From the NCBI GenBank assembly GCA_964188305.1, contig OZ076890.1: a DNA stretch of 64,000 bases. One strand, 5' to 3'. The position numbers and the translations under genes are program-made. Positions 16,263-63,914 of the stretch are shown piece after piece (within the stretch, counting starts at the first letter, position 1; the number at the start of each line of letters is the position of its first letter). Source of the DNA: Podarcis bocagei (taxonomy: Eukaryota). The notes under the pieces were generated by a model. That model worked only from the letters and a program-made list of their open reading frames with translations. It did no database searches and was not told the origin of the DNA.

Positions 16263-17880
16263 TGGAAATGCACATAATTAACTTGCCCCATCAAGACTGT
16301 GCACCCAGGCCTTACAGTCCAACTTTTCTCTGTGTCTGGNNNNNNNNNNNNNNNNNNNNNNNNNNNNNNNNNNNNNNNNNNNNNNNNNNNNNNNNNNNNN
16401 NNNNNNNNNNNNNNNNNNNNNNNNNNNNNNNNNNNNNNNNNNNNNNNNNNNNNNNNNNNNNNNNNNNNNNNNNNNNNNNNNNNNNNNNNNNNNNNNNNNN
16501 NNNNNNNNNNNNNNNNNNNNNNNNNNNATTCTTAAGCAAGAAACATTTTTTTGTCTTGATGAGACTCACAGATCTACAACAATTAATTTCTTGATATATC
16601 CGCTGCGCTCTACAACCAGTGTTGCCTGCCTAATGGCAGTTGGATCAACTTCTTTCCCCAAAAAAGTAAGCCTCTCCATGTCAACCAGAAAAATAGTTTC
16701 ATGTTAATTCTTTGCCACTGGAGTCAATTTTACTATGAGCAACGTAATGACTGGTAACCTTTTAATTATTTGGTTGATGTGGAAAATTGGTGATGTAACA
16801 TTGTTTCTAGGTCTTTTTTCATTGCCTTTTTCATTCTGGTATTAGGTTAATCACTTTGAAGCTATAGTTAAGCTGTAACATTTAGCATGGCTTCACACCA
16901 GGTTAGTGTAGCCAGTGAGGAAAGAAAAATTACAGTTGTCCCAGAGTGACAACTGTGTTGTTCAGAGCCTATTCTTCTGCCACCTAGAATATAAAACATG
17001 GAGGGGAGGGTTGGGCAATGTGACAAACAGGTGGTTTTCAGTTGCACATATGTTCCTCACATCTGATGTTTGACAGTTTTGTCTCTGGGTGGGATAAAAG
17101 AACACTTAGTTTTCAGTAATAGGAAATTAAAAGATTTAAAACAAATATGCAAATTTTTGCTATGCCAGGATGCCTGGAGCATAATAGACTGTATTTGGTG
17201 TGCTTGTTTTGTTTCTTTGGTAGAGCTTATTTGATAAACTTCTAACACTTTCCTTTCTACTGCATTGCAGTGAAGTGGAAGTCAACAAAATCACACAATA
17301 CTTGTGAGTGCCACTGCACCAAGTTAACTTGCTGGTTTTCTGCTCGTTCACAATTCTACTTGAAAACAAGAATTGAATCTTAGCTCTTTGTCCATGATAA
17401 GAGAAATCGAAACCTTAGAAGCAGAGATTGATTATTAAAAAAACAAACAAACTACTGGTTAGTCAAATACAAAACTGAGGTATCTCTATTCCAGAGTAAA
17501 CATTTGTTTAAGGACTTCAAGGAAGACATCAGTAAATACTGTATTTAAATTAAAATTGGTAACTTGAATGTGTGTAATTATTTTGGAATCTGTCGAAAAA
17601 CCAAATACCCCTGCAAAACAGATACAGCCCACCCTATACTATTTAAATATTTGCTGTTTTATTTTATAGAAATTATTTTGCTGAATTCACAAATAGAATT
17701 TGATTTAAGAAGACCATTTTTGTCCTGTGGTGTGTGTGTGGTTTTTTTTTTTAAAACAGACTGCACAGGTAGTTGAATTCTGTGCACTATACCGAATTCT
17801 GGAACTAAAGTCGCATTGAGAATTGGTGAACAGAAATTTGACCCTTGACAAGAATAAAAAAGGAAAACTGTAATAGTTTC
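16263..17880 (+). other. USP9X: USP9X 3'UTR (3' end approximate, may extend further); AATAAA at 17853-17858; miR-26 8-mer TACTTGAA at 17357-17364
   Basis: AT-rich, repeat-free sequence after the stop; poly(A) hexamer. Confidence 0.6.
16340..16527. other. Run of 188 N (assembly gap or masked segment)
   Basis: Seen directly. Confidence 0.99.
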
Positions 17881-52960: not shown

Positions 52961-53005
52961 ATGAGTCATGTGGCAGTGGAAAATGCCCTCGGTCTAGATC
53001 AGCAG
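52961..53005 (+). CDS. DDX3X: DDX3X exon 1 (MSHVAVENALGLDQQ)
   Basis: Recognisable DDX3X N-terminus; CAG|gtaaac. Confidence 0.97.
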
Positions 53006-54634: not shown

Positions 54635-54692
54635 TTTGCTGGTCTAGACTTGAATTCTTCAGACGATCAGAGTGGAGGAGGTACAGCAAGCA
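54635..54692 (+). CDS. DDX3X: DDX3X exon 2 (FAGLDLNSSDDQSGGGTAS); completes the NES
   Basis: Splice sites; peptide. Confidence 0.96.
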
Positions 54693-55670
54693 GTAAGTAT
54701 ATAATTCAGAATTAAAGCATCTTACTGCAGCTAGTAGAGAATATTTGATGGCATGTTTGTCCAGTACAATAGTAGAAAAATGGCAGATTTTGATGCTTGA
54801 GAGAGCAGATCTATGGCATCCTGCAAGTACTGTAATTGTAGACTACTAAATCTCATTGGTTTTCTGTGTAAATCAGTTACACCTAAATCTGTTGTACATT
54901 ACATATTACCATGCTAGAAACTTGCCTTTAAAATGAATGTTAAGAACCTTAAATTGGGTGCCTGCTTAATCAATTAATTGCAGACCTTAAAGGAGTAGAC
55001 TGCAAGTTGCATACAGTTTTGGTGCACAATAGTATGAGCATGGTATCAAAAGGGATTTAGTGATTGTGTTACTCAAGAGTACATAAATTGTTTCATCTGC
55101 TAAAACAGGGTATGTATTCATTTCCTATAGTGAGGCAGCAGCACATTCCAGTTATTGTTGTTACTATTATGTATTAAATTTGTGTATTGTCTGAGAATAC
55201 AAAATACATTAGAAAACAAAGCAAACTAATAACCCACTTCCCACAAACACATTTTGAAAGCCATAGAATGTTAATTAGCCAAATGCCTGCTTGAAGAGCA
55301 AAGTTTTCGTTTGGCACCTTTATTACATACATTTAGGTGTCCCTAGGGGAGAGCATTCCACAAATGGGGAACCACCATCCAAAAGGCTCGTTCTCGTGTT
55401 GCCACCCTTTGGTTGTTTGCATATTTATAACAATGAAAATGCTTGGGAAGGGGTGCTATATGTTTAGACTAAATGCTTAAGCATGAAGTACTTAAACACT
55501 TCTTAATGTGCATGTTGGTTTGGTTTTTTGTAAGTTATTTAAAGTTGGTATAGCAAAAAATGACCAAGTTTAATCAATAAACAAAATAAGGTGTTAATAT
55601 TATTGGTAATAAAAGAGCAACAGACCTTGCTGCATAGAGTTTTAATCTGAAACTTTTTTCCAACTTTCAG

Positions 55671-55721
55671 AAGGCCGGTACATTCCTCCTCACTTACGGA
55701 ATAGAGAAGCTTCAAAGCAGG
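55671..55721 (+). CDS. DDX3X: DDX3X exon 3 (KGRYIPPHLRNREASKQ), eIF4E-binding motif
   Basis: YIPPHLR motif; splice sites. Confidence 0.96.
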
Positions 55722-57679: not shown

Positions 57680-58431
57680 GTATGTCACAAGTTCCTTTAT
57701 TTTTGCAACAGACTGATACAGGTGCCTGTGCCCATTTGGAAGTTGTTGCCTCACAAGGACATGCTTAGAAACATTGAAGAGTGATTCCTGCTGCTTCCAA
57801 GGACTACCCAACACAAGATAGGATGAACCTTTCCCAGGGGAAAGCTTATTCACTCTCATACACATGTGGTTCATTCTGAGTTCCTCTCAGTAGATCCATA
57901 GAAATTAATGGACCTAAGTTAGCCATGTTTGTTTATTTCAGTGGGTCTACTATGAGTAGGACTAGGACACAACCCTTAAACGCAGCTGTACAAATTATTG
58001 AGTGTGACGTTGCACAATACCTGTTGAATCAGATGCATTGCCCTTTTCTTGAGGGAAAGGACTCCTTGTGTTGGACTGTTTGGAGCTGTTGAGAGTTTAT
58101 CTTGGCTTCTCAGGGTGTCTTGACCTGGTGAGAGGCTGGCTCCTGCCATTCCTAAGTCCTCTGTACGTGTGCTTTGGCAGCAGGACGGGGTTCCCCTATC
58201 CTGGTCACCAGGAGGCAAGAGAGTGCTCTTGTTCCCCTTCCCTCTCCGCCAAAGGTGAGCTGGTGAGTGATTGTAAATGTGGAAGCCTGGAAAGTTGACA
58301 TCTTCACACGGATATTTTGAGTAAAATATCTTTTACAGGTTGAAGAAATTCTACTGTACCATTATATTGAGTTTTTATGCATTTGAACTGGATTGAATTA
58401 TAATGCTGGGAGTTTTATGGCTCTTTTGCAG

Positions 58432-58491
58432 CAGGTAATGCCTATAACTATGCAGCAAACTACTATTCCAATTCGATGCCACCAAGAAGCT
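58432..58491 (+). CDS. DDX3X: Candidate DDX3X cassette exon (AGNAYNYAANYYSNSMPPRS), 60 nt, NAGNAG acceptor
   Basis: cttttgcag|CAG... T|gtaagt; phase 1-1; Y/N-rich low-complexity peptide. Confidence 0.65.
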
Positions 58492-58668
58492 GTAAGTTGG
58501 TGTCAGGATGGAGTGGTCTTAAAAAATTGTCATTTGAGAGCATGCCTCTAAGCATATTGCATAGTTATAACTTGCAGTCAACTAACAGTGTGAGCATTTG
58601 TTCCTTTACGCTCATTGTCAGGCATGCTTCCTTTGCCTGCAACTTAACTTTTTTAGGATTAATTTGAA

Positions 58669-58859
58669 TACAGTAAACCCACAACTTACACACAGTTAGC
58701 ATTCAGCTTTACATGTGTGGCAAAAAATAAAAAGGGAGCGGGGTTCAAGAAAATATTTATTTGGAAATCCCACCCGCTATTGAACCCAATGTGTTTTGAA
58801 TTTGGCTTTAGGTGCAATCCCTGGAACGTAAATTCTGCATAAGTTGCGGGTTTAATCTA
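58669..58859. mobile_element. Tigger-like MITE (same family as 9143-9372)
   Basis: cagtaaacccacaactta / taagttgcgggttt TIRs. Confidence 0.65.
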
Positions 58860-61725
58860 CTGGCTTGCTGTGTTTAAGGAAAACTACACATTAAGGAAAC
58901 TACAACTTCAGTTGCACTTTGTACCTGAGCAAGCTTTTGTTTCTTCTAATGGATAGACTGAAAAATACAAGGAAAGGTTTCCAATTCTGCACCTTATAAA
59001 ATTTAAACCCACAACAATCCTAATACTCAGGTCTTGGCAAGTGCTGGAATTGTGGTTTTTTTTGGATCTTCAGATTTATTAAACATGGCATAAAAGAAGC
59101 TGGCCCACAAGACACTTGAAAGTTACCAAGCCTTTTTAGTGCTAATTTTCTAGCATGTTTACCATGCCCCACAGTTTTAGTTACATGTTGAAGCTAAACA
59201 GTGTGCAGTGCTGTCTGGTGTGAGTAAGATATAAGAAGAGCCCTTCTGGATCGGTGGAAACGCCCATCCAGTCCAGCATCCTGCTCTCACACTGGCCAAC
59301 CTAATGCCTATGCGAAGCCAACAAGGAGAATTCTAGTTCTTTCCTCTTGAATACAGTACTTGGAGGTAGTAAATAGCTACTGTAACTAGTAGCCATTAAT
59401 AACCATTCTATTTGGATATAGAATTTTAGACACCTAATAAAATCTTTTTAAATATGGAAGGAAATACACAATATACTCTGAACTTAAATATTAATAATTT
59501 ATTTTCCTTAATTAGTGGAGGGGTTGTGTGCTTAATCCTATTTACAGAATTTCCCAATTTAAAAAATCTATGAACTTCTCCCCTGAGCCCTTGGACAGGT
59601 TCTCTAAGCAGGTTCACAGAACTTCTATAAGTTTACATATTAGCATAATGTACTACATCTTTGAAAACTATTATTCCAACAGATGTCATGTTGCTTTTTT
59701 CAGTTCTTTTGCATTTTGGTTGCTTATAGGTTGGATAAGTAATTGAAATATTTAGAATAGATTGTTCTAGGTAATTTAGTAGAACTTGGCATTTGGAAAT
59801 CTGTCACAAACTTCAGGTTTTTGGAATGTTAAAGAATAACAATTAGATGGAGCAGAATCTTACTTCATCCAGTCTAGAGATGTAAAATCTTTTTAACAGC
59901 GAACAAACAATTTTTCTAGAACTTCTTAAAAAAATGAAATACATGTACAGTAAATTGTTAATTACAGAAAGTATAAATGTTAGGGTGCTGTCCAACTCCC
60001 TAATCTACTGTGGTGGCAGGGGGCTCACTCTAGTGAGTCCAGATCAATCTGCTCCCTATTCGCCCACTGAAAATGTTCACTGGTAGGAGTACTGCCAGCA
60101 AGCTTCACTCCACCATCTCATAAAAAGTCCCCAACTGGGGAGGGATCAGGGTAATTCAGCTGGCCTGGGATCCTGAGCTGACCCCACTGTTGTCAATTGA
60201 TTGCATTGGTCCTGATAGCTACAACAACTCTGCTCTTGCCTTCCAACCTGACCAGAGTGAGTGACAGTGCTGTGGGTGTGGCAGTGGCTCTGCTAAACCC
60301 TGCAGCTGCCTGGACAGAGGTTCGATTGGTCTGCTAGTCAGACAAATAAATTCAGCATCTTGGAAGTACCAAACGTGTCTCAGTGGAAGGATCTTGTAGT
60401 GAACAGAAACCTTGTAGTGAACAATATTCTTACTAGGGCTTAGGTAGTTAGGATCATCTAGGAATTGAAGAATCAATACAACCCCCTAAGGTAACAGTGG
60501 GATAGTTTGGATATCATGCTAAATCACAGTCAAGTGTGATGCAAGCAAGCCTTGGACTCGTACACTTCCTTCTTGTGCTTCCTTTGGTGTGCAGCCATCA
60601 ACAGGAGTTAAGAATTCTTTTCTGTTAAGTGCAGTTTGTTATGTCCAAATTGACAAGCCTGTTAATGCTAATTCTGGTTTCAACTTGGCTTGTTGCAAAT
60701 GGTTCTGTAGTTAATATTCACCAGTTTGTCAGTTTGGACATCTAGCATTGATATCAATCTTTTTGGGCTATCGGGCACATTTGGAACGATGAGAGTTCTG
60801 TGGGCGTCACCACCTCTGGTTGCTTCTTTCTCATCTCTTTCCATCTCCCCCTGCAGACAGAAAGCACACGTTTTTGACTTGAGTAAACATTGGATCCTGT
60901 AGAAATAAGATACCCCAAAAATGACCATGAGAATAAAGCTTGCAGTGCGAGACTGCACAGTAAAAAATGCAGATCTGATGCTTCCCACTATCACAAACAT
61001 ATCAATGGCACAAATTCTAATGGATGTCCTCCAGAGTACCACAGTGGCCACCCCAGGCATAACAAGTTGTGGTCAAGCACAAATATAAGTTGAAGCCTTC
61101 AAGAACTCCTTGTTGGCGTGTCAAGGAAAGTGTGGGAGCCCAAGGCTCACCAAGGTTCATTTGCATCACTAAACTGGCTTAGATTCAAACATCATTTTAT
61201 GAACTTTATACTGCAATCTGCTCTTACTAGGAAGCAGGATTTGTAATCAAAATAATACAACACTCATCGTTGACTGGTCTGTCATTCCATTCATAATAAA
61301 ATATATATTTGCCAAGTTTAGCACAGGATCTTGAATCTTGCTTCAGTCGGTTTGACTAGCTTTCTTTAGGACATGCTTCTGTTTTCAGCATGGCAGCGAG
61401 CATTGATGCACAAAACTAATACACATACGAATCACTGCATTAGTTTTTTTTTAAAAAAAATAATCTCTTGGCTCAACTAAATACACAACTTTCCATAAAA
61501 CCTGGTTTGCAGCTTTGTAAAGTGGCTTACAATGCAGCATCCATGTCAGGTGAAGGCTTGCATCTCTAATCAAGAATTTAGGCCCAACACTACTCTGCTT
61601 TCCCCAGAAAGGAGCCTTTCATGTAAATTTCTGGCAGCAAAAGTCGCACTGAGGCTGTGGAGCTTGCAAAAACTTGCTAGCGCATTTTACCCTTTAATTT
61701 TGTAACTTTTTATTCTCTGCCAAAG

Positions 61726-61857
61726 ATTCCCCCAGCTGGGACTCTCGTGGAGGTAATGGCTATATGAATGGATATGATCGTGACAGCCGGATGAATGGCT
61801 ACGATCGTGATCGTGGTGTGTTTGGATCCAGAGGAGGATCTGGACGTGATGACAGAG
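61726..61857 (+). CDS. DDX3X: DDX3X RG/RD-rich cassette exon (DSPSWDSRGGNGYMNGYDRDSRMNGYDRDRGVFGSRGGSGRDDR), 132 nt
   Basis: Strong acceptor, AG|gtgggc donor, phase 1-1; resembles the Xenopus An3/fish Ddx3 N-terminal insert (from memory). Confidence 0.88.
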
Positions 61858-62829
61858 GTGGGCGAGGGAGACCTGGCACCTTTCATCCAACAAAACTTGA
61901 GTGTCCACTGCTGCTCTTGGCAATAAAGACAGCTTCTTTCTAGAGAGCTTAGATCAGGTTATAGTAGCACAGGTTGAGACTTCTTAGGGGAGTTTGAGGC
62001 TTTGTTTATCAAGTGCCATTTGCAGAGCTGTTTTGCCCTCAGCTGGAAAGCTACAGAATTAGTACTCATTCTCTTTGGTTACTTGAATTTGGATCCCGGA
62101 GCCTTAATTACAGTTACAGCTACAGGATACTACCGTAGAATTCTGGAGTTGTACAGTTATCCAAATAAAACAGTCATACGAATGTCTCAAGAACAGTGAA
62201 GCTTCTCACTGAGTGGCCTCATTATACCAGTTACCACCGACTCCAGATTTTTCCTGTCAGGAAATACCATCAGTCTCCAGGTCTTTTCACTGCTTTCTGT
62301 TTCATCATCTTTGCTTCAGTGTACCTGTGGACACATTGATGGACTCCGGGAAGGTCTCGTTTTCAGCCCAGGTTGCCATTTTTTTTCTTGAGACAAATTA
62401 ATTGTAACTACAATTAAGATAATGACATAATTTTTGGAAGTGGTTCACGAAAGGTTGCCTAATGGCCATTCTCTACTACAACGCCATGGGCGCAAAAGTA
62501 GGCAGGGTCCTAATGGACATTTCTAGGCTTTGCTTTTGGGGTTTGCTGCAGTTCGAGAGAATCATCGGCTGCTGCCTCTTGAATATAATTTGCTACATGA
62601 TCACCCTGGACCAGCTTTTTAAACGCTGCCATCTTGCAATATTGGCAGTAAAACACCTGATTTCAGTGCCTTTTCTTGATTTAAAATGTGCAATAAAATA
62701 TGGGAATTTCTCTTAAGACAGGCTGCTAATTACTCAAACATTTTCATGGTGATGGTTTGAGGGATTTTGTATCTTTACAGTGAGCATCTACACAATCAGT
62801 GATTTCATTGGTGATTTTATTATTCCTAG

Positions 62830-62956
62830 GATTTGATGGTGGGTGGAATGCTGGCAGAGACAGGGATGCTGCATACAGTAGCTTTGGTGCAAGGAGTGAC
62901 CGTGGATCAGGAAAATCAAGCTTCTTTGCTGAGCGTGGTAATGGTTCAAGAGGAAG
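62830..62956 (+). CDS. DDX3X: DDX3X canonical exon 4 (GFDGGWNAGRDRDAAYSSFGARSDRGSGKSSFFAERGNGSRGR)
   Basis: AYSSFG/KSSFF motifs; splice sites. Confidence 0.95.
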
Positions 62957-63737
62957 GTAAAAATGTAGCTCTTTTCCCATTAAAAATGTGAATGCCACCA
63001 CTGTTAAACATTCAGTAATCTGTAGAAATAGGGGAGAACTGACCAAGGTTAAGACATGTGTTTTTTGTGTTGAAAGCCTGCTTTGTAGCTCTTAGGCTTG
63101 CATTGACTGTAGCATGTTAATTTTTATGTGTATAGGGCTACCCTCTCATTTCCACCAACTTACTGCTGTAGGACTTCTAAAGTTTACATCCACATAATAG
63201 AAGTCCTTGTGCCTTCTTAGCATTAGCACATATGCCCCAGCAGAAAGACAGGGGAATGACAATTTAGAGCAACTGTGCAGTTATGGCATATATCTGGGAT
63301 TGGAAGGAGCTCTTTCAGTAAGCTTTCTCCTTGTTTGATGAAGGACCAGGAGGCTGGGGCGTTCAGGGGATGTGGCAGAATTGTGTTGTGAGAGCAGTAG
63401 AGGAGTTAAATGATCGTCCAATTCCCAACGTTGATTAAAATGCAATCTGAACAATTAAATGCCTCTACCTGGCAGGTGTGCCACCTCAAATTTCATTGGT
63501 ATTCTGTCCACATGCCTCATATATATGAGACAGTTGAAATATTGGGGTAATACATCCTTCTCAAGGGGATGTCAAATCTTGGGAAATAGATAGCGGTGGT
63601 GTTATACTGATTTATTGTTTAATTATATCATGAAATACTTTGAAGCTGCCTAGCAGCCAGGCAGCTTCATTAGTGTGTTTAGTACATCACATCACAGAAA
63701 CTGTCATGAAAACTGGTTTTAGTGTAATTTCATGTAA

Positions 63738-63914
<177 letters not shown>

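Follow-up and report, generated by a model that had tools for sequence, protein, structure and literature searches.

The window analysed here is a 64,000-nt stretch of Podarcis bocagei DNA from contig OZ076890.1, to which positions refer, and it carries the 5′ part of the RNA helicase gene DDX3X on its plus strand. Between exons 3 and 4 of this gene lie two alternative coding exons of 60 and 132 nt, each a multiple of three in length, phase 1-1, open in the DDX3X frame and bounded by canonical AG/GT splice sites. The last base of the 60-nt exon is a lone T, and the exon that follows decides the codon that this base begins: TAT (Tyr) when the 132-nt exon comes next, TGA when exon 4 is joined directly. 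This split codon had been pointed out in a first-pass annotation of the sequence, and it holds both when the bases are read directly and when the exons are joined by conceptual splicing. The relevant features are given below, with a slash marking each splice site and P0040 standing for isoform X2 of Podarcis raffonei DDX3X.

52961..53005, + strand: DDX3X exon 1, coding part; ATG at 52961, peptide MSHVAVENALGLDQQ, donor CAG/gtaaac; equals P0040 residues 1-15 exactly
54635..54692, + strand: DDX3X exon 2; FAGLDLNSSDDQSGGGTAS plus 1 base, donor A/gtaagt; exact peptide match to P0040
55671..55721, + strand: DDX3X exon 3; eIF4E-binding YIPPHLR region; ends in phase 1 on G, ...CAGG/gtatgt
58432..58491, + strand: 60-nt alternative coding exon; ttttgcag/CAGGTAAT...AGAAGCT/gtaagt; peptide AGNAYNYAANYYSNSMPPRS plus a terminal T; found in 57 annotated isoforms
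58491, + strand: terminal T of the 60-nt exon; begins the split codon that reads TAT (Tyr) if the 132-nt exon follows and TGA if exon 4 does
58540..58544, + strand: GCATG motif, 49 nt 3′ of the 60-nt exon; kept in four squamates and a turtle
61726..61857, + strand: 132-nt alternative coding exon; ccaaag/ATTCC...ACAGAG/gtgggc; RG/RD/Tyr-rich, DSPSWDSRGGNGYMNGYDRDSRMNGYDRDRGVFGSRGGSGRDDR; phase 1-1, weak donor
62830..62957, + strand: DDX3X exon 4; cctag/GATTTGAT; GA start
63743..63839, + strand: start of DDX3X exon 5; exact peptide match to P0040

Residues 1-190 of P0040 are identical to the exon peptides of the window, with the same boundaries, and residues 1-190 of isoform X1 of P. muralis are likewise identical. 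The two cassettes, which had been proposed from the DNA letters alone, are thus real alternative coding exons, conserved and annotated in many species at the same coordinates; exon 3, which had been started at 55672, begins at 55671 (cag/AAG).

Reading frames and the annotated isoform repertoire

Conceptual splicing of exon 3 to the 60-nt exon, the 132-nt exon and exon 4 leaves the frame open across the Tyr junction (..KQAGNAYNYAANYYSNSMPPRS-Y-SPSWDS..; in full, ...KQ-AGNAYNYAANYYSNSMPPRS-Y-SPSWDSRGGNGY...DDR-G-FDGGW...). The frame is also open when exon 3 is followed by the 132-nt exon and exon 4, or by exon 4 alone, the initial GA of exon 4 completing GGA (Gly) after either exon 3 or the 132-nt exon. 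Joining exon 3, the 60-nt exon and exon 4 instead reads ...PPRS and then TGA, formed by the T at 58491 and the GA at 62830-62831. The T/GA stop therefore leaves three productive combinations only, namely both exons, the 132-nt exon alone, or neither. It comes after 71 codons, 213 nt from the AUG, and lies 126 nt 5′ of the exon 4/5 junction with further junctions beyond, which is more than the 50-55 nt by which a premature termination codon (PTC) must precede a downstream exon junction to trigger nonsense-mediated decay (NMD) (PMC7764535). An mRNA that includes the 60-nt exon alone is therefore predicted to be an NMD target, if it is made.

The annotated isoforms were surveyed in 199 full-length DDX3X proteins, gathered by a profile search with the peptide of the 132-nt exon, by a search with the N-terminal 190 residues of P. 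raffonei X2, and from cluster listings. The profile had five rows, made up of 132-nt exon peptides and a long unrelated protein (P0004) placed as row 1, where it sets the full-length filter; the local score was 57 bits. Five misclassifications by the regular expression were corrected by eye, after which the classes are:

Both exons: 57/199 proteins
132-nt exon without the 60-nt exon: 68/199 proteins
Neither exon: 64/199 proteins
60-nt exon without the 132-nt exon: 0/199 proteins
Exon 3 absent: 10/199 proteins

The 60-nt exon is thus translatable only if the 132-nt exon follows, and none of the 57 annotated isoforms that carry it lacks its partner. The term 'AND-gate' used in the first-pass annotation fits the protein output of the 60-nt exon only; it does not hold as a symmetric AND, since the 132-nt exon is productive by itself. 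Fisher's exact test on the co-occurrence of the two exons in the 199 proteins gives 2e-13, the isoforms of related species not being independent. This value is no independent evidence for a gate, both for that reason and because a transcript with a PTC cannot appear as a protein isoform. The absence of a 60-nt-only form from protein annotation is tautological, as PTC transcripts are not annotated as proteins. The truncated protein that such a form would encode, 70-73 aa running from M1 to the last residue ahead of the junction, was sought by exact sequence for ten species; no match was found in a collection of 15 billion proteins, which is weak negative evidence.

In P. raffonei six isoforms are annotated, of which X1/X2 (751/736 aa) contain both cassettes, X3/X4 (731/716 aa) the 132-nt exon only and X5/X6 (687/672 aa) neither; the two members of each pair differ by 15 aa through a separate event further downstream. 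These three classes are found in the RefSeq models of over 20 squamates and turtles; they recur in Lacerta, Zootoca, Anolis, Sceloporus, Pogona, Varanus, Elgaria, Rhineura, geckos, snakes and turtles. Annotation of the 132-nt exon extends over reptiles, coelacanth and lungfish, and in one assembled transcript contig (L003) it is spliced to exon 4 exactly as predicted. The exon is hidden from an exhaustive search of representative proteins because these are clustered at 50% identity: with its peptide as query, such a search returned only three small genomic open reading frames (ORFs) and an unrelated repeat protein, and a profile built from the small ORFs added just one more ORF. The contigs that hold the small ORFs are orthologous DNA of two other squamates (L001 and L002).

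Some models and one assembled transcript begin at a Met inside the 132-nt exon (MNGYDRDS..), namely P0064, P0065 (Podarcis lilfordi) and P0066 / L003:1-340. In L003 the internal start is due to retention of the intron 5′ of the 132-nt exon, a hint that its removal is slow or that transcripts retaining it are common.

Age and conservation of the two cassettes

Homologues of the 60-nt exon are present in turtle (GNICSYMKNYHSNSGPPPRS-Y), sturgeon (AGNAYTSGRYSGYSLPTVRS-Y), caecilian (..HSVPPARS-Y), one salamander (junction residue Y) and coelacanth (AGTVYSYMKNDRFYSEPSARN-C). The deep lineages, that is sturgeon, coelacanth, caecilians and salamander, were compared at the protein level, and genomic DNA was compared for squamates, turtle and alligator (Carettochelys, Pantherophis, Eublepharis and Alligator, with Podarcis and L002). 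Since the junction residue is always Tyr or Cys, the exon has ended on T since the bony-vertebrate ancestor, and the terminal base is kept from sturgeon and coelacanth to lizards. At the DNA level, Podarcis, L002, Pantherophis, Eublepharis and Carettochelys all have ...AGC-T/gtaagt or ...AGT-T/gtaagt at the end of the 60-nt exon and ag/GA at exon 4. The T/GA pairing is hence conserved in four squamates and one turtle, and it breaks down in the alligator, where the 60-nt exon has decayed into a pseudo-exon that has lost 1 nt and lacks the gtaagt donor, and where exon 4 begins cag/GG and would read TGG after a T.

Both exons and their splice sites are kept in the L002 squamate, whose 60-nt exon has an in-frame CCA insertion, and indels in this exon are multiples of three. 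Squamate and turtle versions of the 60-nt exon share 75-93% identity with that of the window, and general intron identity to L002 is about 75-81%. The exon and its flanks together are conserved above the intron background, with the last ~30 nt of the 5′ flank nearly invariant. Variable columns number 9/19, 9/19 and 4/19 at the three codon positions, a count from five species that is a small sample in a low-complexity region. Conserved nucleotides and flanks without a codon-position signature are in keeping with a regulated alternative exon in sequence of low complexity; they do not tell the hypotheses considered below apart. The GCATG at 58540-58544, kept amid diverging intron, may be an RBFOX-type enhancer of tissue-specific inclusion.

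The two cassettes are not the only ones in this interval. In coelacanth as many as three cassettes separate exon 3 from the 132-nt exon, and every coelacanth isoform with the 60-nt exon has another cassette before the 132-nt exon. The residue at the coelacanth exon 3/132-nt exon junction is Glu (G/AA or G/AG), so the 60-nt exon joined straight to the 132-nt exon would in this species read TAA or TAG. In caecilians the counterpart of the 132-nt exon is part of every listed isoform. The alligator has a different annotated cassette (GSWSPGASGFCSSAADTSPSMQ) 5′ of its decayed 60-nt exon (L007:8275-8340, L007:9425-9528), and frogs and axolotl have yet another (GYPRCQYPAVDVYKGYGDWWSQR / DFPQCHYRDVAAYNHRNAWCSDR). 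Judged from these comparisons, the stretch between exons 3 and 4 is a hotspot of phase-1 cassette turnover.

Origin of the junction stop

We propose that the junction stop is probably a historical by-product of exon structure and not a selected, dosage-setting poison switch. Two old phase-1, frame-preserving cassettes lengthen the N-terminal disordered region of DDX3X, the 60-nt exon adding a Tyr/Asn-rich segment and the 132-nt exon an Arg/Gly/Asp/Tyr-rich one. The old, T-ending 60-nt exon would normally adjoin the 132-nt exon, whose initial AT gives Tyr, and exon 4 happens to begin with GA, giving TGA at codon 72 on a direct join. Should this fourth combination, the 60-nt exon alone, arise, quality control would clear it; we infer that the form is degraded by NMD, that it is rare and that it has no role in dosage. 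For an exon that ends on T, chance alone would give a junction stop with a frequency of about 0.20 for any partner dinucleotide (AA, AG or GA being the ones that give a stop) and of about 0.28 when the G is fixed by the Gly codon, and because of this expectation the T/GA coincidence is not significant on its own. In productive isoforms the A of the GA that opens exon 4 occupies a fourfold-degenerate position, and selection on it beyond that on its neighbours was not found: the A is the same in five lineages, and other fourfold sites of exon 4 agree in 50-90% of species pairs. The conservation of the T can be explained in other ways, as it is the first base of Tyr or Cys in a Tyr-rich region and also occupies donor position -1 before a perfect GTAAGT. 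On the comparative evidence, the regulatory interpretation fares no better than chance.

Several observations nevertheless weigh against a by-product, and they are also those that favour its opposite, in which selection keeps the T and the initial GA of exon 4 so that inclusion of the 60-nt exon alone creates an NMD target, tying the composition of the N-terminal disordered region to DDX3X dosage and possibly forming part of DDX3X autoregulation. The sole lineage that lost the 60-nt exon, the alligator, has also lost the GA, which fits relaxed constraint, but this is a single case (n=1). The T is kept since the bony-vertebrate ancestor whatever the partner, and it is more than a conserved Tyr residue, because coelacanth has Cys at this position; some constraint may therefore act on the base itself. 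The partner rule of coelacanth, where a predicted TAA or TAG makes a second partner-dependent stop in a second lineage, hints at design. The codon-position pattern of the 60-nt exon is unlike ordinary protein-level purifying selection and makes a nucleotide-level function possible, in keeping with its conserved flanks. Furthermore, DDX3X is negatively autoregulated through destabilisation of its mRNA, by a mechanism that is unknown and in a manner thought to be ancestral in amniotes; together with the dosage sensitivity of the gene, this leaves room for a switch coupled to NMD (PMC11789639). Co-inclusion enforced by NMD also has a precedent elsewhere, for example in TBRG4 (10.1101/464404).

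Even so, we regard such a selected gate as decidedly unlikely. The T/GA pairing seen in four squamates and a turtle has to be set against the chance expectation and against the background-level conservation of the exon 4 A, and the look-up in ten species gave no truncated product. The 60-nt exon is coding in 57 isoforms and hence is no dedicated poison exon, and NMD is often less efficient for stops as near the AUG as the 213 nt found here. Mammals autoregulate DDX3X with a protein in which, judging by the human sequence, exon 3 is joined straight to exon 4, so the junction stop cannot be the conserved autoregulatory device.

A third explanation is mechanistic. If a shared tissue-specific regulator or a fixed splicing order enforced co-inclusion of the two cassettes, the 60-nt exon would practically never meet exon 4 and the stop would be without consequence. 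All 57 isoforms with the 60-nt exon do have the 132-nt exon, but since annotation cannot show forms with a premature stop this is no proof of coupling, and the failure to find the truncated product in an exact look-up is equally what this explanation would lead one to expect. The counterpart of the 132-nt exon appears constitutive in caecilians, where the T-ending exon looks like a plain adjoining cassette, and the conserved GCATG 3′ of the 60-nt exon could serve a regulator; a motif common to both exons was, however, not demonstrated. The 132-nt exon can clearly be skipped in squamates, turtles and coelacanth (the 64 'neither' isoforms). We consider enforced co-inclusion unlikely, while granting it some weight. 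The most doubtful reading, in our opinion, is the most far-reaching one, by which the T-ending 60-nt exon would be a 400-million-year-old junction-codon device that yields Tyr, Cys or a stop according to the next exon, its grammar of permitted exon combinations enforced by NMD and perhaps contributing to post-transcriptional autoregulation in non-mammalian vertebrates. In squamates and turtles such a device would produce its stop with exon 4 (TGA); in coelacanth, as predicted from the Glu junction, it would do so with the 132-nt exon (TAA or TAG).

The junction stop can be placed beside systems in which exon combinations are policed by the reading frame. TBRG4 exons 4 and 5 are mutually inclusive, as each alone shifts the frame, and exons 3a and 3b of U2AF1 are mutually exclusive for the same reason (10.1101/464404). 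NMD-enforced exon co-inclusion is a known principle. As in TBRG4, the 60-nt exon of DDX3X yields protein only with its neighbour, and the forbidden combination has a premature stop for which NMD is expected. Unlike in TBRG4, where neither exon is a multiple of three, both DDX3X cassettes are, and it is a split codon that produces the stop; the rule is moreover one-sided, the 132-nt exon alone being productive and abundantly annotated, so that the two exons are not a mutually inclusive pair. With the poison exons of RNA-binding proteins, which couple alternative splicing to NMD (PMC7764535), the 60-nt exon shares its status as an alternative exon in the gene of an RNA-binding protein, conserved intron flanks and one outcome with a stop more than 55 nt before later junctions. 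It differs from them in that it has no internal stop and is coding in its annotated isoforms, its non-productivity being set by the downstream partner. A literature search for a DDX3X poison exon gave no relevant report.

In-frame exon joins that create a stop at the junction are known in exon-skipping genetics as exceptions to the reading-frame rule. DDX3X resembles these exceptions in that a change by a multiple of three makes a stop from the halves of a split codon; those, however, are pathological deletions or skips, whereas here the combination is one of natural exons. The long non-mammalian DDX3X isoforms in RefSeq, some of the sturgeon ones named 'an3', contain the same 60-nt and 132-nt exons in reptile, amphibian, coelacanth, lungfish and sturgeon. 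The exons are thus already in public gene models and only the remark on the junction stop is new. The suggestion that screens would miss this stop is right for purely length-based ones and goes too far for ORF-based transcript annotation, which would flag it.

DDX3X is among the most dosage-sensitive RNA helicase genes. If the stop does regulate, it would make a concrete and easily testable candidate for unproductive splicing in reptiles and would illustrate how screens based on exon length can overlook a premature stop. If it is a by-product, as we think likelier, the outcome is descriptive: the N-terminal disordered region of DDX3X in non-mammalian vertebrates is built from very old phase-1 cassettes, comprising the 60-nt and 132-nt exons and further ones in coelacanth, frogs and crocodilians, of which only some combinations are translatable.

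Tandem acceptors and flanking sequence

The acceptor of the 60-nt exon is a NAGNAG (gcag/cag, 58426-58437). Lacertids, geckos and snakes are annotated with use of the upstream AG, which adds an Ala, and L002 and turtles have the downstream AG only (caacag/). In coelacanth, exactly this Ala distinguishes isoform X1 from X2, and the tandem acceptor of the 60-nt exon looks ancient. A recursive splice site at gcagcag/GTAATG was considered and rejected, as the GT is not conserved (GGAAAT in L002 and gecko, GGAATT in turtle, CATACA in snake). The exon 3 acceptor is also a NAGNAG (ttcag/aag/GCC, 55668-55676), with an alternative exon start at 55674. Gecko and Anolis isoforms that are one residue apart (..TASKGRY.. 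vs ..TASSRY/..TASRY..) fit the use of both exon 3 acceptors.

The intron that follows the 132-nt exon reads in frame from the donor as GGRGR.. (61858-61880, gtgggcgagggag...), like the extra GRGGYRSRGG.. segment found after this exon in isoforms of coelacanth and lungfish. The weak GTGGGC donor may thus be what is left of a formerly longer exon or of an alternative 5′ splice site. Elsewhere in the window, the part that belongs to USP9X contains a run of 188 N at 16340-16527, an assembly gap or a masked stretch.

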